In this document: one piece after another, positions 8,644 through 48,521 of the stretch
How positions within the stretch are numbered: position 1 is the first letter of the stretch
Layout of the letters: each line of letters starts with the position of its first letter
Sequence record: NC_070957.1
Strand: one strand, 5' to 3'
Length of the DNA: 64,000 nt
Notes under the pieces: generated by a model
Database searches by the model: none
The model's input: the letters and a program-made list of their open reading frames with translations, nothing else
What the model was told of the DNA's origin: nothing
Program-made: the position numbers and the translations under genes

Positions 8644-10068
8644 ATGAATGTCGTCTATTATCTTGTCAGCACAGCTATTAAAGACAAGACGGTTGGTGTT
8701 TCGGGCGGTCATGGGTATTCCTACTCATCTCAACCCAACGGAAACACCAGAAAGTTGACCAAGGACACTCCATCCTCCTACGGATATTTCGTTAATGGAA
8801 GTCTGCAAAGCATTGCCGTCACTCAGGAAGGGATCTTCAATGGTCGTGGTCTTGGAGCACCAACACCATACGAAGCGTTCCTTTCTCACTTTGTAGCGCT
8901 GGTAGAACATCTGAAAGATAAAGAAGTCGAGAAGCTCCTGATCATACACAACTGTCCTAATGGACAGAAACTGTTGAAAGCAGCAACCCTGACCGAAAAG
9001 TTTCGTAACAACGAACTGGTTCTGAGAGCACGGGAAAGGTTCAAAGAGCTGGGTGATCGTGTCATCCTTGATGACGAGTATTACGTTAAAGGTGGCGAAG
9101 GTGCCAAGCAAGCCCATAAACAATTGGACTTCGCAAAGGCCCTGGTAGAAGTCGGGCAACTCCAGATGGATGTCATTGATGAAATGACACCTAAAGAGTT
9201 TAAGAATCCCGAGAATGACTTCAACAAGATAGTGACCGCATCCCGCTGGTATTTCAATACCGGTGATCGTTCGACGCATTACAACGTTGATGATAAAGGT
9301 TACTTGGAGTATAACTTTGGTCGTCCCGAGCCAGCCAAGCATTATTACGGCAAGGCCACCCCGGACACCATGTACTCCAGTTTGTTCACCAAGAAACCAA
9401 TTACGGTTCTGGATAAACTGTACGACTTCTGTAAGGAACGTAAACCGAATCCATATAACCTGCTTGCAGCAGCGAATGTGGACATGGTTAAGTCCAAGGA
9501 GATTAGTCGGATTATCGACATCCTCCCTGGTACCGTGCAACGTAACAGTTTGGTAGCTCCAATGGAGATAGGTGGGAAGGAAGATCCCATCTTGGTCGAT
9601 TTTATCGATCCCCCTGGTCTGTCCTACCGTATCGTTGATTTCCATGAAAAGCTTCGGTACTACCACACCTTCTTCCAGATGCGAGATGAAAATAATGTTC
9701 ATGGCAAATCAGCCTTTGTGGACATTACCAATCTTTTCTATCTTACTGACGAAAAGGGTAAAGTAAAAATCCATCCTGGGTTCACCAACAACACAATCAC
9801 CATTCCCATTCCTGTGGAATGTCCTGGTTGTGTTAAACCGGTGACTATTAACTTGGCGATCAAGTATGATTGTCCTGAGCGTAATGCTTTCAACAGCCTG
9901 ATCAATAACAAGGTTGTTGATTTCAAGGTATGGCTTGGTTTGGACTTCTCCAATGAGTCGGGTGTTCGGTATTACACCATCATCGAGACTCCGGAGTTCA
10001 ACTATATTCATTCCAACGCTTCAGCCAATCTGCGTGTGTACAACCTGAAAGAACTCGGTCGTAGTTAA
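8644..10068 (+). CDS. RNase H-like fold protein of phiKZ-like phages, probably catalytically degenerate (474 aa)
   Basis: N-terminal pattern VSGGHGYSY ... ALVEHL ... LLIIHN ... YVKGGEG follows RNase HI topology, but the acidic catalytic positions are substituted. Confidence 0.6.
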   Translation: MNVVYYLVSTAIKDKTVGVSGGHGYSYSSQPNGNTRKLTKDTPSSYGYFVNGSLQSIAVTQEGIFNGRGLGAPTPYEAFLSHFVALVEHLKDKEVEKLLIIHNCPNGQKLLKAATLTEKFRNNELVLRARERFKELGDRVILDDEYYVKGGEGAKQAHKQLDFAKALVEVGQLQMDVIDEMTPKEFKNPENDFNKIVTASRWYFNTGDRSTHYNVDDKGYLEYNFGRPEPAKHYYGKATPDTMYSSLFTKKPITVLDKLYDFCKERKPNPYNLLAAANVDMVKSKEISRIIDILPGTVQRNSLVAPMEIGGKEDPILVDFIDPPGLSYRIVDFHEKLRYYHTFFQMRDENNVHGKSAFVDITNLFYLTDEKGKVKIHPGFTNNTITIPIPVECPGCVKPVTINLAIKYDCPERNAFNSLINNKVVDFKVWLGLDFSNESGVRYYTIIETPEFNYIHSNASANLRVYNLKELGRS

Positions 10069-41399: not shown

Positions 41400-41972
41400 A
41401 TGAACTTTGACCACCTCCGCATTTACACGCAACTCCGCGCACTGATCCAAACTGCGTACACCATCAAGAACACCCGTGCCGCTATGGTCTCCACTTGGGA
41501 TGAACTCAAGGACGCCGAAGGTAAGGAAATCATCGTGGAGCAGTACATGACCAGGGCGAAAGCTCAGTTGGTTCAGATGTACGCACGTCGTCTGATGAAG
41601 TACATGGAAAGTATCGCCAACCTGGACGTCATCCCGATGACCACCGAAGATGTCAAAATCGGTAATTGGCGTGTGGACTCCATCATCATCCAACTGGCCA
41701 GTAACGAGATCAAAGATCACGACCACATGTTCCAGTTGATGATGACCAACATCTATGGTGTTACGACCAAGATGTTCGATTTCATCGACTCTGGTTTCAA
41801 ACTGGAGAAATTGCTGGACCTCATGTCTAAGCAATACCTCTCCAGCTTCGAAGAGCTCAATGACGAGTCCTTTGAAGTAACTGAGGAATGGGCTGAAGAT
41901 CTCATCAAGGCGTTCATCAACGGTGAGCTCCAGGATCCTGGTTTCAAGTTGCTTTCTTTGACTAAGAAGTAA
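41400..41972 (+). CDS. Hypothetical alpha-helical protein (190 aa)
   Basis: AAGGA RBS; flanked by terminators; weaker early-like motif at about 41353-41368. Confidence 0.8.
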   Translation: MNFDHLRIYTQLRALIQTAYTIKNTRAAMVSTWDELKDAEGKEIIVEQYMTRAKAQLVQMYARRLMKYMESIANLDVIPMTTEDVKIGNWRVDSIIIQLASNEIKDHDHMFQLMMTNIYGVTTKMFDFIDSGFKLEKLLDLMSKQYLSSFEELNDESFEVTEEWAEDLIKAFINGELQDPGFKLLSLTKK

Positions 41973-41982
41973 TAACCACTAC

Positions 41983-42015
41983 TAGAACTAGGAACCCACT
42001 GGGTTCCTAGTTCTA
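41983..42015 (+). terminator. Intrinsic terminator
   Basis: tagaactaggaaccc-act-gggttcctagttcta, perfect 15-bp stem, then a T-tract. Confidence 0.85.
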
Positions 42016-42043
42016 TTTTATTTGGTCTATTTATTTTCGGATA

Positions 42044-42059
42044 TACATTATTAACATGA
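42044..42059 (+). promoter_or_regulatory. Putative early promoter
   Basis: tacattattaacatga. Confidence 0.55.
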
Positions 42060-42127
42060 GCATAGAGCATTGAACAACCGCGGACCACTTCCGGTAAAAC
42101 TCTTGTCTCTTTTAAGGGAGAAACAAT

Positions 42128-43186
42128 ATGTTTAACGACTACTACGGATTTCGCACTTCCATTAATGGCGGTGTGACATTCACCATCACCCCGCTAGGTG
42201 ATAGACAGTATCTGGAATTCCATCTCCGGGATTTGGATACTGGTGAAATGAAAGTATCCAGGATGAACCTCACCGCCGAGTCCGGTGGAACACTTTGTTC
42301 ACTCCTGCTTCGGATGATGACCCATATGGAAAGTGGGGGAGGAAAGAAGACCTTCAAGTGGGATGGTTCTATCCCATTGGTGTTTGTTTACGAAATAGGT
42401 ATTGGGATACGGATCTGCGCAGATGGGAAACATTATGTGTTCCTGTCTGGTAACAAAAACCTGTTGCTGCGTGGATTGGAATCAATCGGTGAGATGACGG
42501 AAGCGTGCGTCAAGAAAGACTATGACTACGCCCAGCATATCGCCTATTGCTACAGGCTACTCCCGAACTATGTGGATCAGGTATTCGAACAACAAGAATC
42601 CCGGGTCCGGATGGTTCACAATACCAGGTTCGGTTTCGACATCTGTCACGAAGACAAGCAAGGTAGCTTCCGGCTTTCCTTTGGTGGGAAACGTCTTGAT
42701 GTTATCGAGATCCACGAAATGATAGTTGCAATCATCAAGTTAACCTGTAGCGTTAACGATGGTAAAACAATCAACATCGGAAAGTACATCTTTACCAACC
42801 TCGATACAGAGAGCGGGGATCGTTACATTGGAATTTTCCGTAATGCGATTCACGTTTCTTGTCGTGCCAAGATGTTACTGGTGGGCACTGGAGAACTGGA
42901 AGCTATTGTCCAATCTCTGGGTAACATCATTTTCATGGAGACGACACGTCGTGGAAGTGATAGTAAAGAACTGGCTCGTTTCACCAGAGCAGAGAGCGAA
43001 AACCTGAAGAAGAACGTACAGCGACTGTGCGAGCTTTACAGCGATCGTCACAAATGGACGGACCAAGTTTACACCTGGTTGAGAGAATGCACTACAATGA
43101 GCTTACAAGAGCTCTCAGTGGAGTACGGTGGGGTACAGATCAATCGTAATAGACTGCTCCGTAACAAACCGCTACTCAATAAGTAA
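42128..43186 (+). CDS. Hypothetical protein, cytoplasmic paralog family A (352 aa)
   Basis: GGGAG RBS; shares a motif block with 43304, 44430, 45996 and 47940 (see findings). Confidence 0.8.
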   Translation: MFNDYYGFRTSINGGVTFTITPLGDRQYLEFHLRDLDTGEMKVSRMNLTAESGGTLCSLLLRMMTHMESGGGKKTFKWDGSIPLVFVYEIGIGIRICADGKHYVFLSGNKNLLLRGLESIGEMTEACVKKDYDYAQHIAYCYRLLPNYVDQVFEQQESRVRMVHNTRFGFDICHEDKQGSFRLSFGGKRLDVIEIHEMIVAIIKLTCSVNDGKTINIGKYIFTNLDTESGDRYIGIFRNAIHVSCRAKMLLVGTGELEAIVQSLGNIIFMETTRRGSDSKELARFTRAESENLKKNVQRLCELYSDRHKWTDQVYTWLRECTTMSLQELSVEYGGVQINRNRLLRNKPLLNK

Positions 43187-43211
43187 TTTCCTACTCATGT
43201 AGGGATGAGGT

Positions 43212-43239
43212 GGAGGAACAATTCCGTTCCTCCTTTTTT
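43212..43239 (+). terminator. Intrinsic terminator
   Basis: ggaggaac-aattcc-gttcctcc followed by tttttt. Confidence 0.8.
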
Positions 43240-43267
43240 CGCAGTGCTACCCCGTAAAACGGATGAC

Positions 43268-43283
43268 TGCATTATTGCCATGG
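43268..43283 (+). promoter_or_regulatory. Putative early promoter
   Basis: tgcattattgccatgg, 12 of 16 identical to the 42044 motif. Confidence 0.5.
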
Positions 43284-43303
43284 CTAAACGCCTAGGAGTA
43301 ATT

Positions 43304-44287
43304 ATGAACGTTATGAAAATGATTCACGCACCGCTTGACAATCTCGGTGAGTACCACGTCGGGATGTTCCCCGAAGATCCTGAACGAGTCTACTTGATGG
43401 ACTTAAACTTCCACGAACACAATTCCATGGTGATCCATCGCTACACCAAACACGAAATGGGTGAACTCTCAAAGATATTCAAGAGTGTTCTTACCTCCAT
43501 GCAATTTGCAAGGAATGCGACCATCAAGTTCGATGTTGCTGAATACGGTGTATCGGTCATCAAAGGGGCGAGTATCGAGATCCGTAATCTCGAACACGTT
43601 CATCGCCCTAATCTGACAATGAGATTCTGGGGACGGGCGAGTGATAAAGACCCTAGCGGTGAACTCGATTGGTTCTCCCAGACTGAGCGTGCACTACTGG
43701 TCCTTTCTGAAATCTTCGGAGCAATGCACGAGCTTAACGAACCAGGTAAGAAAGGAAAACTCTCGACAGTGATGCGGTTGTTTAAGAAGCATTCGTCAGA
43801 ACATGAACTATCGGAAAAGCAGTTTGTCGATTTCATCGGCGCTACCAGACCGGATAGACGCGAACTGATAAACGACATCATCATGATCGGGCACTCGCTG
43901 AGCGATGGTCCTGTTCACCATTCCGGGTTAACGTTTGCAAGTACCGCTGACCACTATCATCTTGCACTGGATAAAGGAGAACACCTCCCTGCATTGATAA
44001 ATAGTTTCAGCAAAGTAGTCCGGGGTGAAGATGCCGTGGATCACTTCACGGAATACAACGGGGAATATCCCTGGATGTCCCATAGCTTTATGGGTTATTC
44101 TGCAAAGAAAGGGATGCCCGCCTGGAGAGACCGAACTGTCGTTATGGGGTATAACACCTACATGAAGACAGGACGGTTCAGTACTTTGACGAGTGTAGAT
44201 GTACTTGAGTATATTGTTCAAGTACTTATCGAAATTGAGGAACGAGTGAAACGACTAGTCGAACTCTATCCTCCTAAGACCAAGTAG
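43304..44287 (+). CDS. Hypothetical protein, paralog family A (327 aa)
   Basis: Start reassigned from 43205 to 43304: AGGAG RBS, and a terminator and promoter motif occupy the upstream part of the longer ORF. Confidence 0.8.
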   Translation: MNVMKMIHAPLDNLGEYHVGMFPEDPERVYLMDLNFHEHNSMVIHRYTKHEMGELSKIFKSVLTSMQFARNATIKFDVAEYGVSVIKGASIEIRNLEHVHRPNLTMRFWGRASDKDPSGELDWFSQTERALLVLSEIFGAMHELNEPGKKGKLSTVMRLFKKHSSEHELSEKQFVDFIGATRPDRRELINDIIMIGHSLSDGPVHHSGLTFASTADHYHLALDKGEHLPALINSFSKVVRGEDAVDHFTEYNGEYPWMSHSFMGYSAKKGMPAWRDRTVVMGYNTYMKTGRFSTLTSVDVLEYIVQVLIEIEERVKRLVELYPPKTK

Positions 44288-44293
44288 TGTGGC

Positions 44294-44319
44294 AGGGTGG
44301 AGACTTCGGTCTCCACCCT
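44294..44319 (+). terminator. Terminator hairpin with cUUCGg loop
   Basis: agggtggagac-ttcg-gtctccaccct, 11-bp stem. Confidence 0.8.
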
Positions 44320-44360
44320 ATAAACCTTTATTATTTCTTTGCTCTATATCTTTTCAAATC

Positions 44361-44376
44361 GATATTATTAAGGTGT
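44361..44376 (+). promoter_or_regulatory. Putative early promoter
   Basis: gatattattaaggtgt. Confidence 0.65.
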
Positions 44377-44429
44377 ATGCAAGGCCATATAAATTAACTA
44401 ATCTTCAACAATGACTAGAGGAAATACCC

Positions 44430-45401
44430 ATGAATGATTTCATCGCTGCTCGTTTCGGACATAACGTTTTCATCGGCTTCGATCTGGAGACACCTGATTG
44501 CTTGGATGTGATCAGTGCTTCCGGTGAACGCATGGAAGTGCTGGCGATCAGCCATTACCGTCAGGATGCTCGCGGAATGTTCCGTGATCGTCGTTACGCA
44601 CTGGTCCGTGCTATTGAAGGGATGTTGATCCATCTCTCCGTTCTCCCCAACGAGAAACACATCAAAGCGTTTGACTTCCTGGAGCTGTCCTACATTCCAG
44701 GGGAAGGCTGCATGCTTCGTTACGACCGTCAGCGTGTATACCTGATGCGTTGCCCGCGACACATCAAAGCTCAGGAATTCAATGTCCCTGGCTTGGTCGT
44801 CGTCCTGACTCGTTTGATGAACCTGATCAAGGCCAACATCGAGTACTGTGACAATGACCTGAATGAAAAGGAAGCGCGTCTCAAGTACAAAGAGAATGAC
44901 TACCTGATCAACACCCATCTTTACGAAGTGACCCGGATGGCAAGTCCTACTGGTAACTTCAACCGCAGTTATCAACGTTACTGGGCTTTGGCAGTTCGGA
45001 TGTTCCAAGGTACCCAGGGAACCCCTACTGATCCGGCACAACCGTATGCTTACGCCAAGGTACGGTTCTACAGTCCGCGTGGTTTCATGATCTATCAGAC
45101 TGGTGCTGGTGTTGGTTGCAAGGAACGAGATGCGAAACTGTTTGACGCTCTCGATCGTTGCCGCCTGGGTGATCATCTCCAAGTGGTGTACACTACCCAA
45201 CGTGGTGCGATGACACTTTCAACTACTCCGGATTGCGAACCGGATGGTTATGGTGAAATCAACATGCACCTGGTCAGTGGTCCTGCCGGTAGTTCGTTGA
45301 CCATCCCGTATGAAACAGACGCGATCGTGTTCATTAAGAACTCCATCGCTGCGGCAAGTCGTGAAGCAACTGAAGCAGTTCGTGCACTGCGTTCGGCATA
45401 A
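44430..45401 (+). CDS. Hypothetical protein, paralog family A (323 aa)
   Basis: GAGGA RBS; shared motif block. Confidence 0.8.
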   Translation: MNDFIAARFGHNVFIGFDLETPDCLDVISASGERMEVLAISHYRQDARGMFRDRRYALVRAIEGMLIHLSVLPNEKHIKAFDFLELSYIPGEGCMLRYDRQRVYLMRCPRHIKAQEFNVPGLVVVLTRLMNLIKANIEYCDNDLNEKEARLKYKENDYLINTHLYEVTRMASPTGNFNRSYQRYWALAVRMFQGTQGTPTDPAQPYAYAKVRFYSPRGFMIYQTGAGVGCKERDAKLFDALDRCRLGDHLQVVYTTQRGAMTLSTTPDCEPDGYGEINMHLVSGPAGSSLTIPYETDAIVFIKNSIAAASREATEAVRALRSA

Positions 45402-45418
45402 TCTAAGAGGAAGCTAAC

Positions 45419-45757
45419 ATGTCAGTAGAAAGCATTAAGGAACGTGTTAAGAATTTCGTTAACATGTCCGGTATCGATGTGAACTTCAATGGTCGCATCA
45501 TTACACCCAAGGCCAGGTTCCGTAAAGACCGGATGAAAGCCACCCAGGAAACCGCTCGTCACTATCGCGAGATCAGGATTTCTGATGACGTACTGGACAA
45601 TCTCGGAATCGAGAAAACGGATGGCAAGAACATCCCGACCATCGCCGAGTGTTTTGAGATGCTTCCTCCTCACTTCAAGCGGAAGGACAGTATCGTCAAG
45701 TACATGGAATCCCGCCGTACCGAATTTGACAACCGGCTGAAGGAGTACCTGCAATGA
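45419..45757 (+). CDS. Hypothetical basic protein (112 aa)
   Basis: GAGGA RBS. Confidence 0.75.
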   Translation: MSVESIKERVKNFVNMSGIDVNFNGRIITPKARFRKDRMKATQETARHYREIRISDDVLDNLGIEKTDGKNIPTIAECFEMLPPHFKRKDSIVKYMESRRTEFDNRLKEYLQ

Positions 45758-45900
45758 CTGATGAGAATCTTCCTCAGTACATCCCTTTAGACTATATAGG
45801 GAAAGTCAGGAGTCGAGTCAAAAAGCACGACGCGGCAAGACTCAAAGCGATGTACGAACGTGCACGCAATGTCGTCAAGAACAATACCCAGTCTAAATGA
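45754..45900 (+). CDS. Small basic protein (48 aa; not in the ORF track)
   Basis: AAGGAG RBS and ATGA overlap; MTDENLPQYIPLDYIGKVRSRVKK...NTQSK. Confidence 0.6.
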   Translation: MTDENLPQYIPLDYIGKVRSRVKKHDAARLKAMYERARNVVKNNTQSK

Positions 45901-45995
45901 CTGGGTTATCGAGTTGCGAGTATTCAGGTGGTATTATCCTGAGCTCGCAATCATGATGGACAATTCCGTTCATCATAATTTAAGAGGAAAGTAAG

Positions 45996-46910
45996 ATGTC
46001 CTGTAAACTGCTGAGTATCAATGTTCACCCGACCTTGTCCATGGTTATCACTGAGGACAAAAGTTCTCATTTGCGTTTCCTTGGTCACACCAGTGAAAAG
46101 ATGGCACTGACAACCACACCCATCAAGTTGGCTGGGGAGTTGATCGAGATCACTGATTTGTGGCGGGCGAGTGAATCAACATCCGGGATCGCGACCACAC
46201 GCTTTAAGGTGATCAAGTCCTGCCTGGTCTATTACCCATTTGCCGGTAACGCAATAACGCTGATGAAAGCCGAGAACCGCGAAGAAGGTATTCGGAAATT
46301 GGAACGGCTCATCCAAATATTCAAGCAATTCACCGACTACATTGCCGACGTTATTGACTTCGAAACAGCAACTAAACAGTTGCGTGAATTAGAAGATAAA
46401 ACGATGGATGGATTGGTCTTCATCTACGGCGGTAAAACTTCGCAAGGTGGTAAACGTTTCTTCGAGAAGACTGAGTTCTTGGTCGGACGGTTGGTTGTAA
46501 GAACCACTTCTTTGGTTACCACCGATTTGGGTGAACGCAAAGAAGTTCCCGTTGGGCTCCAACTGGTTTTCACTGGGACAACAGGTAGCGCTATATTTGC
46601 TGTCCTGGACAACCCTATCAACAATGACAAGTACGAGGCGATCATGAGGATGACCAAACCTCATCCCGATTGCGTTCCTCGTATTTTTCATACTGCTGGA
46701 TCTACTGCACACGTTAGCAGTGGACACGGTCAGAATTTACCTGACGGATTCCCCGTCGGGATTACGTTCACCTATGTATCACCGGTGACCGCTAGACAAC
46801 TCACTCTCTATCGGGATGCTGATGGAATGGTCGAGTTCTTCGAGAAGACCTATCATGATGCAATGCTTCACGGTCATCTCAACCCTATCAACAACGAAAG
46901 TAAGGAGTAA
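45996..46910 (+). CDS. Hypothetical protein, probable paralog family A (304 aa)
   Basis: GAGGA RBS; LERLIQIFKQFTDY matches LTRLMNLIKANIEY of 44430. Confidence 0.8.
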   Translation: MSCKLLSINVHPTLSMVITEDKSSHLRFLGHTSEKMALTTTPIKLAGELIEITDLWRASESTSGIATTRFKVIKSCLVYYPFAGNAITLMKAENREEGIRKLERLIQIFKQFTDYIADVIDFETATKQLRELEDKTMDGLVFIYGGKTSQGGKRFFEKTEFLVGRLVVRTTSLVTTDLGERKEVPVGLQLVFTGTTGSAIFAVLDNPINNDKYEAIMRMTKPHPDCVPRIFHTAGSTAHVSSGHGQNLPDGFPVGITFTYVSPVTARQLTLYRDADGMVEFFEKTYHDAMLHGHLNPINNESKE

Positions 46911-46913
46911 ATA

Positions 46914-47279
46914 ATGGGCGGTGTAAACCCTCTGTTCGCAGCACTGTTGGAACTGATCGGCATCGATGTCTATGATACCGACAACTATCAAATCGGTCGC
47001 ACTCGTTCCGGTAACTTCACCGACAACGGTAACAAGATCGAGTACGCAATCCGGACCATCCGTCTGGGTGGTTCACTCTGGATCACTGGTACTCTGGGTG
47101 ATGACGTGGTTGAACTGCGTGTTGTAGAACCTGGCGTAGCCGCGTTCAGCATCGGTCTTCCCAACAAGAACGATGCTGAGACTACCAGCAAGATCGTGTT
47201 CAACATCTCCTTCACCTGCGAAGAAGATCTCCGTACCGCCTGGCGTCGTGTTGAAGGTCTCTTCAGCTACGCCGGTTAA
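46914..47279 (+). CDS. Hypothetical protein (121 aa)
   Basis: AAGGAG RBS. Confidence 0.8.
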   Translation: MGGVNPLFAALLELIGIDVYDTDNYQIGRTRSGNFTDNGNKIEYAIRTIRLGGSLWITGTLGDDVVELRVVEPGVAAFSIGLPNKNDAETTSKIVFNISFTCEEDLRTAWRRVEGLFSYAG

Positions 47280-47286
47280 ATCGACA

Positions 47287-47309
47287 AGGAGGGAAATAAA
47301 TTCCCTCCT
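47287..47309 (+). terminator. Terminator-like hairpin
   Basis: aggagggaa-ataaa-ttccctcct. Confidence 0.65.
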
Positions 47310-47324
47310 ATAATCTTTCACACC

Positions 47325-47340
47325 TATATTACTTAGGTGC
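47325..47340 (+). promoter_or_regulatory. Putative early promoter with an exact TATATTAC core
   Basis: tatattacttaggtgc. Confidence 0.7.
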
Positions 47341-47424
47341 TGGTACGAATAGTAAAGCTTTACGCTTCGTGCTATAACTTGTTAACCAATTGTTTCTTTT
47401 CCACAACTAAGGGAAATCTGAAAA

Positions 47425-47871
47425 ATGTCCAAGAAAACTGAACTGACCTTCGCTGAAATCATGTCCGCCGGTAAAGACTCCCTGGTGAAGGGTGCTGACA
47501 TCCACAACGCGACCCACACCATCAAGTTCAAGGCCGAAGACCTGACCATGCCCAAGGGCGTGACCGCTGAGTCTCTGGACCTCCACATGAACTTCATCAA
47601 CCAGTCTTCCGAGCAAGTCAGCGCCGCTGTCATGGACATCGCCCAGGACCGCTACGAAGACACCAAGCACCTGGCTTGGGATGGTGTTCTGGAAGTGACC
47701 CCCGGTCTGATCCTGACTGGTTTCGCCAACCTCCGTGAAGAAGTCGACGGCGAAGCTGTCTTCGGTTCCATGTCCAGCCTGGTCGACTACAACTACGGCA
47801 CCGAGCTGACCGACTGGATCACCAGCAACCAAGAGCTGATGGCCGAGAAAGCCAAGAAGCTCTTCGAGTAA
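47425..47871 (+). CDS. Hypothetical acidic protein with strong codon bias (148 aa)
   Basis: Stand-alone promoter-gene-terminator unit; codons end almost exclusively in C or G. Confidence 0.85.
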   Translation: MSKKTELTFAEIMSAGKDSLVKGADIHNATHTIKFKAEDLTMPKGVTAESLDLHMNFINQSSEQVSAAVMDIAQDRYEDTKHLAWDGVLEVTPGLILTGFANLREEVDGEAVFGSMSSLVDYNYGTELTDWITSNQELMAEKAKKLFE

Positions 47872-47882
47872 ATGTTCGATCG

Positions 47883-47906
47883 CCCGTTCCTGGAAACAGG
47901 AACGGG
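47883..47906 (+). terminator. Intrinsic terminator with GAAA loop
   Basis: cccgttcctg-gaaa-caggaacggg, then a T-rich tract. Confidence 0.8.
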
Positions 47907-47939
47907 TTACTTCATCTCTTTTTATTTTTGGGTTTTTGT

Positions 47940-48521
47940 ATGAACGATCGTCCCAATGCTAAACAAGTTCTTGCAAAACACACATCTAGAACGTTCCTTT
48001 GTGATGGTGATCGTTTAAGTTGTGTGTCCTTTATTCATCACGTAACCAAACACGTCTGGATAAAGGGTGGTGAGAGCTCAACTTATTTCCACGACGCCAC
48101 CAACTTGAAACTTTTCCTGGGTGGAAAGATCATCAAGCTTCATAGCTGTGATCTGGGTAGTGTTCACTACGGCCTGGTTGATTTCGTTCGTAAACTGGAC
48201 GTGATTATAAAAGCTGTCAGTAACACACTCGACTTCCTTGGTAAGAATCCAAAGTACGGTGACCGTTTCGTAGTGAAGGAATTCCTTAACCCGGTGGATG
48301 GTAACTTGGTGGACATCTATACCAGTTCCATAGCTATTACATCTAGCCCCACTCACGGGTTGACGTTTGAACTCGCGTCATGTGACTTTAAGAGCCGTAT
48401 CACCCTACAACGCAAATCCGGTCCCAAGTTCCTGAGGAAGTTTCTTGATTTCGTCACCAAATGCCGAAATGAAGTTCAGAGTACTCTGGACAAGCACACT
48501 GGTACATTACAGGAGAGTTAA
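47940..48521 (+). CDS. Hypothetical protein, possible shorter member of family A (193 aa)
   Basis: ATG at 47940 with no clear SD; GLVDFVRKLDVIIKAV resembles GLVVVLTRLMNLIKAN of 44430. Confidence 0.65.
   Translation: MNDRPNAKQVLAKHTSRTFLCDGDRLSCVSFIHHVTKHVWIKGGESSTYFHDATNLKLFLGGKIIKLHSCDLGSVHYGLVDFVRKLDVIIKAVSNTLDFLGKNPKYGDRFVVKEFLNPVDGNLVDIYTSSIAITSSPTHGLTFELASCDFKSRITLQRKSGPKFLRKFLDFVTKCRNEVQSTLDKHTGTLQES

Follow-up and report, generated by a model that had tools for sequence, protein, structure and literature searches.

A probable hypervariable accessory island of Aeromonas phage D3, with a predicted Whirly/PUR-type domain in one of its lineage-restricted proteins

Nucleus-forming jumbo phages encode ChmC (Chimallin C; gp61 of PhiPA3 and gp67 of phiKZ), a Whirly-fold RNA-binding protein reported to be expressed early and abundantly (PMC11077065). 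The early promoters used by the virion RNA polymerase (RNAP) of phiKZ combine an AT-rich core with an upstream T-rich element (PMC8244752, PMC7598289). Such phages also carry early orphan genes in blocks, most of them without an assigned role. In this study, we analysed positions 41983 to 48521 of a 64,000-nucleotide stretch of DNA from record NC_070957.1 (the window; positions are counted in it unless another record is named), with attention to five genes called A (42128), B (43304), C (44430), D (45996), and E (47940). The window matches Aeromonas phage D3 (MN102098, 262 kb, genus Ludhianavirus) at 100% identity, and phages D9, D6, and LAh10 are 97-99% identical to it. D3 is an OBP/EL-like jumbo phage of the nucleus-forming type, and every gene in the stretch is annotated as hypothetical in GenBank. 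An initial annotation had read the five genes as divergent cytoplasmic paralogs. Judged as a whole, a different reading seems fairly probable to us: the segment would be a hypervariable accessory island of D3, located between the head-protease module and the tail genes, in which A, B, C, and D are four cytoplasmic proteins of 304-352 amino acids (aa), old, confined to their lineage, and evolving separately.

All five open reading frames were confirmed, with code 11 as the only genetic code used. These genes and the two conserved genes that border the variable part are as follows.

41400 to 41972, + strand: left island border, conserved 190-aa gene with orthologs of 36-55% identity in PS1, CF8, AhC3_1, OBP, N1M2, Yubaba, SXP01, and the metagenomic contigs L013 and L014
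42128 to 43186, + strand: gene A, 352 aa, N-domain (about residues 2-133) predicted to be Whirly/PUR-like, then a second alpha/beta domain modelled with low confidence and a helical tail
43304 to 44287, + strand: gene B, 327 aa, start 43304 preferred over the GenBank start 43205
44430 to 45401, + strand: gene C, 323 aa, an orphan found only within the genus in homology searches
45996 to 46910, + strand: gene D, 304 aa, whose diverged orthologs in the metagenomic contigs L013, L014, and L016 are 320-324 aa long (E 1.7e-5 to L013_6820)
47425 to 47871, + strand: right border of the variable part, conserved 148-aa gene, phrog_13587 (E 5e-34)
47940 to 48521, + strand: gene E, 193 aa, of a separate conserved family of about 190-200 aa across OBP-like phages

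The gene order around the island was found to be kept in 11 relatives (Yubaba, N1M2, PS1, SXP01, AhC3_1, CF8, OBP, ACP1, EL, Kc263, and pEt-SU). In these phages, the virion-RNAP beta subunit, virion proteins, the head protease, and the 41400 ortholog are followed by a variable segment, and then by the 47425 ortholog, more genes, an HD hydrolase, the tail tube, and the sheath. Variation is confined to the content between the 41400 and 47425 orthologs, and this content is wholly different between genera, from no gene in CF8 and EL up to 10 genes in OBP. Among jumbo phages, 68 records contain a homolog of the 47425 gene, those of Pseudomonas phages EL and OBP among them, and no related loci of this family were found in IMG/VR or JGI metagenomes. 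Furthermore, a ChmC ortholog, a nucleus-associated protein with its Asn/Gly-rich tail, is encoded by D3 outside the island (D3 record 42877-43269, E 2.6e-9). The jumbo-phage homologs of the 47425 gene together with this ChmC ortholog therefore mark D3 as a phiKZ-type phage with a multisubunit RNA polymerase.

The cytoplasmic nature of the five proteins was upheld, since none of A-E contains a 19-residue hydrophobic stretch of the membrane type. Their paralogy was not. The initial annotation had described a helix-strand-strand block, followed by a helix, as shared among them. BLASTP among the five proteins and ten neighbouring ones gave nothing better than E 0.5, and in Smith-Waterman alignment against shuffles, with nine domain-sized units in 36 comparisons, z stayed below 3 except for B-E (3.7). 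The all-versus-all hhalign comparison that had been proposed as a check returned probabilities below 2% for all pairs of the five, and with small family profiles among all island families the values were below 10%. Thus, the shared block and helix do not rise above chance. Searches of the whole D3 genome, by profile or by sequence, with A, B, C, D, and the E family returned the query alone in every case. The island families were also compared by hhalign with the approximately 250-330 aa island proteins of OBP, Kc263, PS1, ACP1, AhC3_1, EL, and pEt-SU, and the minimum P among 144 tests was 0.007, which is the chance level. Global hhalign of the N-domains gave a mean score of 4.9 for real pairs versus 4.9 for reversed controls, with unrelated-family controls also run. 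The Chou-Fasman propensity-profile correlation was 0.186 for island families versus 0.186 for control families, in a test without discriminating power, which recovered the modelled secondary structure of A poorly.

Moreover, E belongs to a conserved family different from A-D, with 18 members in 11 cultured phages at 1-3 copies each (2-3 copies in OBP, SXP01, pEt-SU, and Kc263). The invariant residues of this family (H68, K85, F115-L116-N117, F143, C148, K151, and R153) are absent from A-D, the E-family profile gave no match to A-D, and profile searches found no Pfam or PDB relative of the family. So strongly conserved a sequence signature suggests a defined biochemical role for E.

Four contigs (L013-L016) that share the gene order of D3 were reached through metagenomic homologs of E. 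Their 361-362 aa genes align with A over the full length at 19-20% identity (E 6e-4 to 6.5e-6) and are A orthologs. The genes next in order, of 304-310 aa, occupy the position of B, gave the best global N-domain profile score (17.2 versus 4.1 reversed), and are probably B orthologs by these sequence comparisons. The 320-324 aa gene is the counterpart of D, and genes of 128-133 aa and 120-147 aa are the counterparts of the small genes 45419 and 46914. Since collinear relatives carry a positional ortholog of A, of D, and probably of B, these genes are old separate lineages and not recently duplicated cassettes. The identity between D3 and these relatives was 48-68% for flanking genes, whereas it was only about 19-25% for these old lineages. 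The divergence of A, B, and D is therefore several-fold faster than that of the genes around them, and the description of the proteins as lineage-restricted and fast-diverging holds.

The cause that had been offered for this divergence, diversifying selection, did not find support. A-E are conserved in D6 and LAh10 under purifying selection, and the ratio of nonsynonymous to synonymous differences (pN/pS) of D3 versus LAh10 or D6 was 0.05-0.16 for A-E, like that of neighbouring genes. Between L014 and L016, the ratio of nonsynonymous to synonymous substitution rates (dN/dS) was 0.07-0.13 in island genes and 0.005-0.055 in core genes, and the synonymous rate (dS) was raised in several island genes. 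This pattern, taken gene-wide, fits relaxed constraint together with allele exchange by recombination rather than gene-wide positive selection. One 291-292 aa island gene (L014:7846-8721 versus L016:7262-8140) showed 48% identity between the two contigs, with neighbours at 97-98%, and its synonymous sites were saturated; the contrast points to an allele-replacement hot spot inside the island.

The signals between the genes were then placed as listed below.

41983 to 42015, + strand: intrinsic terminator, 15-bp stem followed by a T-run (-24.7 kcal/mol, z -5.45)
42034 to 42058, + strand: early-type bipartite promoter motif before A by motif match, with AT-rich core and T-rich upstream element
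43212 to 43233, + strand: intrinsic terminator, 8-bp stem followed by T6 (-14.7 kcal/mol, z -3.1)
43268 to 43282, + strand: partial ATTATT motif before B, outside the bipartite consensus
44294 to 44319, + strand: probable terminator, stable UUCG-loop hairpin with a T-rich tail only (-22.0 kcal/mol, z -4.55)
44351 to 44375, + strand: early-type bipartite promoter motif before C by motif match
45953 to 45976, + strand: hairpin 5' of D, with the same loop as the 43212 hairpin and a changed stem
47287 to 47309, + strand: terminator-like hairpin after the 46914 gene, from hairpin folding
47316 to 47339, + strand: early-type bipartite promoter motif before 47425, with the same motif in the same place in L013 and L014
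47882 to 47907, + strand: terminator hairpin 5' of E followed by a T-run, without promoter motif

The three terminators claimed at 41983, 43212, and 44294 were recovered as stable hairpins (z -5.5, -3.1, and -4.6 when rounded), with a T-run after the first two and a T-rich tail after the third. As for the promoters, ATTAYYNNRKTG occurs 8 times versus 1.7 expected, and its bipartite form TTTY-N6-10-ATTAYY-N4-TG has 6 distinct sites versus approximately 0.4 expected; all are on the + strand, and a T-rich upstream element is common to the motif sites. The layout of virion-RNAP promoters (AT-rich core, T-rich upstream element, intergenic position, coding strand) was present before A, C, and 47425 and was absent before B. 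The early-promoter motif that had been placed before three genes thus stands for A and C, in bipartite form, and falls for B, where neither the T-rich upstream half nor the RKTG end was found. Since the B site is without both motif ends, two of the three cassettes are complete. Over 38 nucleotides (nt), the promoter region of A shows 76% identity to that of C, and the general promoter consensus also occurs at 2635, 19577, 47316, and 50260; this likeness is, judged by its sequence, the phage-wide promoter consensus itself. In the relatives, it is the 41400-like, 45419-like, and 47425-like genes that follow the motif, and the A-like and B-like genes lie contiguous without a promoter motif of their own, so placed that they are predicted to be co-transcribed as one operon.

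Additional copies of the motif, with an ATATTAYY core and mostly with a TTTYA upstream element, are located on the + strand at 2635, 4226, 19577, 50260, and 52547, and could serve to map early operons across the whole window. The hairpins before B (43213-43239) and D (45955-45981) have a common loop (the ACAATTCCGT region), are 78% identical, and both fold stably. Their stems differ at several paired positions with the pairing preserved, and the two may represent a recurrent RNA element rather than plain terminators.

Gene A has no homolog among 5.8 billion proteins beyond the genus and one contig, and a search with the FamA alignment gave the same result; the cultured-phage relatives of both A and C are at the genus level only. 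No Pfam match at E <= 1 (Whirly, PurA, DUF3276) and no PDB sequence-profile match were obtained for A, and the FamA profile had no matches among PDB sequences and Pfam. When A was modelled by AlphaFold2 (AF2) as a single sequence, the predicted local distance difference test score (pLDDT) was 34. With a four-sequence alignment, residues 8-143 reached pLDDT 56-75 in the order b4-a-b4-a, with strands at 6-9, 16-23, 26-34, and 41-48, a helix at 50-69, strands at 72-76, 84-89, 93-98, and 101-107, and a helix at 110-128, which is the tandem beta-beta-beta-beta-alpha topology. The remainder of the model (second alpha/beta domain and helical tail) stayed below pLDDT 50. Foldseek matched the model to 3k44_B with a probability of 0.97. 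In an exhaustive structural alignment against 48,161 PDB chains, the top four matches were all of one fold, each over residues 2-133 and clear of other folds, with the following values.

3k44, Pur-alpha: 8.2
3n1h, StWhy2: 8.2
2gia, MRP1/2: 8.1
1l3a, PBF-2: 7.6

A separate ESM model of A matched DUF3276 and WapI clusters. The initial guess of PUR/Whirly-type modules in the five proteins is thereby supported for one domain only, the N-domain of A, on which AF2, Foldseek, PDB structural alignment, and the independent ESM model bear. With moderate confidence, this domain is predicted to have a Whirly/PUR-type fold (beta4-alpha, twice). In a Foldseek search of BFVD, A matched PS1_0238 (A0A514TUQ0, 301 aa) with a probability of 0.96 over 304 columns, and D3's own B, C, and D were absent from the top 50 matches. 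On these models, A is best called a lineage-restricted addition to the phage proteins with a Whirly/PUR-type domain, placed in a typical fast-turnover early-gene island.

The origin proposed in the initial annotation, namely serial duplication of whole terminator-promoter-gene cassettes followed by diversifying selection, appears very improbable. The similar sizes of A-D, the terminators before A, B, and C, the 38-nt likeness of the A and C promoter regions, and weak collinear hhalign signals in the block first described (FamA-FamE, P 0.012; D-FamE, P 0.029) would agree with it. However, every similarity test stayed at the chance level, E is in another conserved family, B is without a promoter motif, and dN/dS is 0.05-0.16. 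A and D already have orthologs in relatives whose core genes are about 50% diverged, and probably B as well. Since the A-like and B-like genes of the relatives share an operon without a promoter of their own, and since the 38-nt likeness is a consensus that recurs at 2635, 19577, 47316, and 50260, the duplication of cassettes is unsupported.

Some points nevertheless weigh against the reading of A-D as four separately evolving proteins of an early island. A-D are similar in length. By eye, the first approximately 140 residues of each run from strand-rich to helix, to strand-rich, and to helix, and strand-like and helix-like segments alternate in the same way over the N-terminal approximately 140 residues of the relatives' island families. 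The ESM model of C (pLDDT 0.37) matches WapI and Whirly clusters with its C-terminal half. In addition, early expression and promoter use of the island genes are argued by analogy with phiKZ, and the function of the island proteins is inferred entirely. The matches of the C model, the similar lengths, and the by-eye pattern would fit a deep common origin beyond the reach of sequence methods. In that case, A-D, the extra 291-306 aa genes of the relatives, and PS1_0238-type proteins would descend from one two-domain Whirly/PUR-like gene that was duplicated before the OBP-like clade diversified, the sequence signal having been erased since. We hold this only tentatively, and likewise the narrower proposal that A-D derive from one ancestral Whirly-like gene. 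The predicted fold of the A N-domain, the match of A to PS1_0238 at the equivalent position, the clusters reached by the ESM models of A and C, and slightly raised scores (FamA-FamBm, 10.3; C-FamY, P 0.0033) speak for such an ancestry. Yet no objective test supports it: real and reversed N-domain scores were equal, as were the propensity correlations of island and control families, the model of C is of low confidence, and B, C, and D are outside A's top 50 BFVD matches. More doubtful is its widest form, by which all island proteins of about 300 aa in OBP/EL-like nucleus-forming phages (A-D, the relatives' 291-306 aa genes, and the PS1_0238 type) would be one hyperdivergent early superfamily of tandem Whirly/PUR-like proteins, accessory cousins of ChmC through ancient duplications, which would be variable binders of single-stranded RNA or DNA or of host factors and tune host takeover or counter-defence. 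At the other extreme, the island might be a recombination hot spot that gathers unrelated fast-evolving genes, the Whirly-like model of A being an artefact of a shallow alignment. This we consider unlikely. The absence of homologs outside the genus and three or four contigs in searches of 5.8 and 1.84 billion proteins, the wholly different island content among cultured relatives, the 48% identity of one island gene amid neighbours at 97-98%, the raised dS of several island genes, and the pLDDT of 34 for the single-sequence model speak for this view; however, two independent predictors agree on the fold class of the A N-domain, its top four PDB matches are of one fold and cover the full domain, and gene order and sizes are conserved with L013-L016.

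Under the preferred reading of separately evolving island proteins, the island genes would be read from the phage-wide early-type promoter before A, C, and 47425, with hairpin terminators between them, and A, and possibly B-D, would be made early in infection. During host takeover, A, and possibly B-D, might then bind single-stranded RNA or DNA as Whirly-type oligomers, which we put forward as a tentative proposal. In a somewhat more doubtful alternative, backed by weaker structural matches, A, and possibly B-D, would bind and neutralise a host protein, like WapI/CdiI immunity proteins. A-D are near neutral in charge, and the net charge of the A N-domain is 0. From the models, nucleic-acid binding may be slightly ahead of host-protein capture.

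For gene B, the ATG at 43304 has a GGAG ribosome-binding site 7 nt upstream, and the B N-terminus that it gives is collinear with the 304-310 aa positional counterparts in L013, L014, and L016. The GenBank coding sequence D3_0243, and its equivalents in LAh10 and D6, starts 33 codons before 43304 and so runs through the 43212-43233 terminator; the annotated start at 43205 is probably too long. An exact copy of approximately 88 nt of B (window ~43547-43634) was found at ~9433-9528 of D3 record MN102098.2, outside the window and on the minus strand of locus L019 (~1934-2029). It adjoins a tRNA-like sequence directly before an N run, is present in the D3 records only and not in D6, D9, or LAh10, and appears to stem from assembly or scaffolding rather than to be biological.

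For gene C, the sole non-self match by phmmer among 1.84 billion representatives was the metagenomic protein P0003 (3420 aa, E 8.5e-16), which was rejected as an artefact consisting of a repeated 30-bit match over 55 residues. Its E value is inflated because 14 near-identical tandem repeats of 242 aa multiply a chance 30-bit match to C, and the case is a caution for repeat-rich matches in phmmer searches. To the 291-aa family of the relatives, C has at most a weak link (hhalign, P 0.0033).

The two small genes of the island are the following.

45419 to 45757, + strand: basic 112-aa gene, pI 9.5, whose first approximately 38 aa are common to 128-133 aa proteins of relatives at 40-43% identity
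46914 to 47279, + strand: 121-aa gene with orthologs of 40-43% identity in metagenomic relatives

In the relatives, the genes at the 45419 position (128-133 aa) sit behind a terminator and a promoter motif. Beyond E, the 178-aa gene at 48524-49060 matches only the C-terminal half of 346-350 aa proteins of relatives (L013:10615-11655, L014:10613-11665); the N-terminal half was therefore either lost in D3 or gained in the relatives.

As it stands, the locus is ordinary for phages of this kind. The analysis separates its conserved parts (the 41400, 47425, and E families and the promoter grammar) from the fast-turnover genes A-D, gives one orphan, A, a testable fold assignment related to ChmC, and corrects one gene start. 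If A-D did form a hidden Whirly-type superfamily, their paralogy would be visible at the level of the fold while escaping sequence methods, and it would suggest that RNA handling or host-factor capture is contested between phage and host.

Compared with the early operons of phiKZ-like phages (PMC7598289, PMC8244752), those predicted for D3 likewise have an AT-rich core with an upstream T-rich element in a strand-specific, intergenic motif, and hairpin terminators between short operons of orphan genes. Unlike the phiKZ-like promoters, the consensus TTTYA-N5-8-ATATTAYY-N2-RGTG is specific to the D3 clade. PS1_0238 of Aeromonas phage PS1 lies directly 3' of the 41400 ortholog and thus in the same genomic position as A, although it has no sequence or profile similarity to A. 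With a TM-score of only 0.21-0.24 between the two, their structural match depends on the local structural letters of models that are imperfect. WapI/DUF6228 and CdiI-type immunity proteins are fast-evolving and lineage-specific like the island genes, and WapI-like clusters are among the structures nearest to the N-terminal part of A and the C-terminal half of C in their ESM-Atlas models, with TM-scores of 0.57-0.58 by target. The matches, from models of low confidence, are weak, no gene for a toxin partner is located nearby, and the setting is a phage and not a toxin-immunity pair. PUR-alpha, the plant Whirly proteins (StWhy2 and PBF-2 p24), and trypanosome MRP1/MRP2, all binders of single-stranded DNA or RNA, share 4-10% sequence identity with A; its domain differs in being neutral and in lacking a Whirly, PurA, or DUF3276 Pfam match. 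The closest described case to A is ChmC. ChmC is conserved across its family, is encoded beside non-virion RNAP genes, and has an Asn/Gly-rich tail that A-E do not have, whereas A is of narrow lineage and, at 352 aa, carries a second domain and a helical tail. By hhalign, the probability of FamA against ChmC was 0.2%, and the other island families gave at most 1.6%. Nevertheless, ChmC and A are alike in being jumbo-phage proteins without sequence similarity to known families, in their Whirly/PUR-type tandem units of strand-strand-strand(-strand)-helix, which are predicted for A, and in having the same PDB relatives (MRP1/2).

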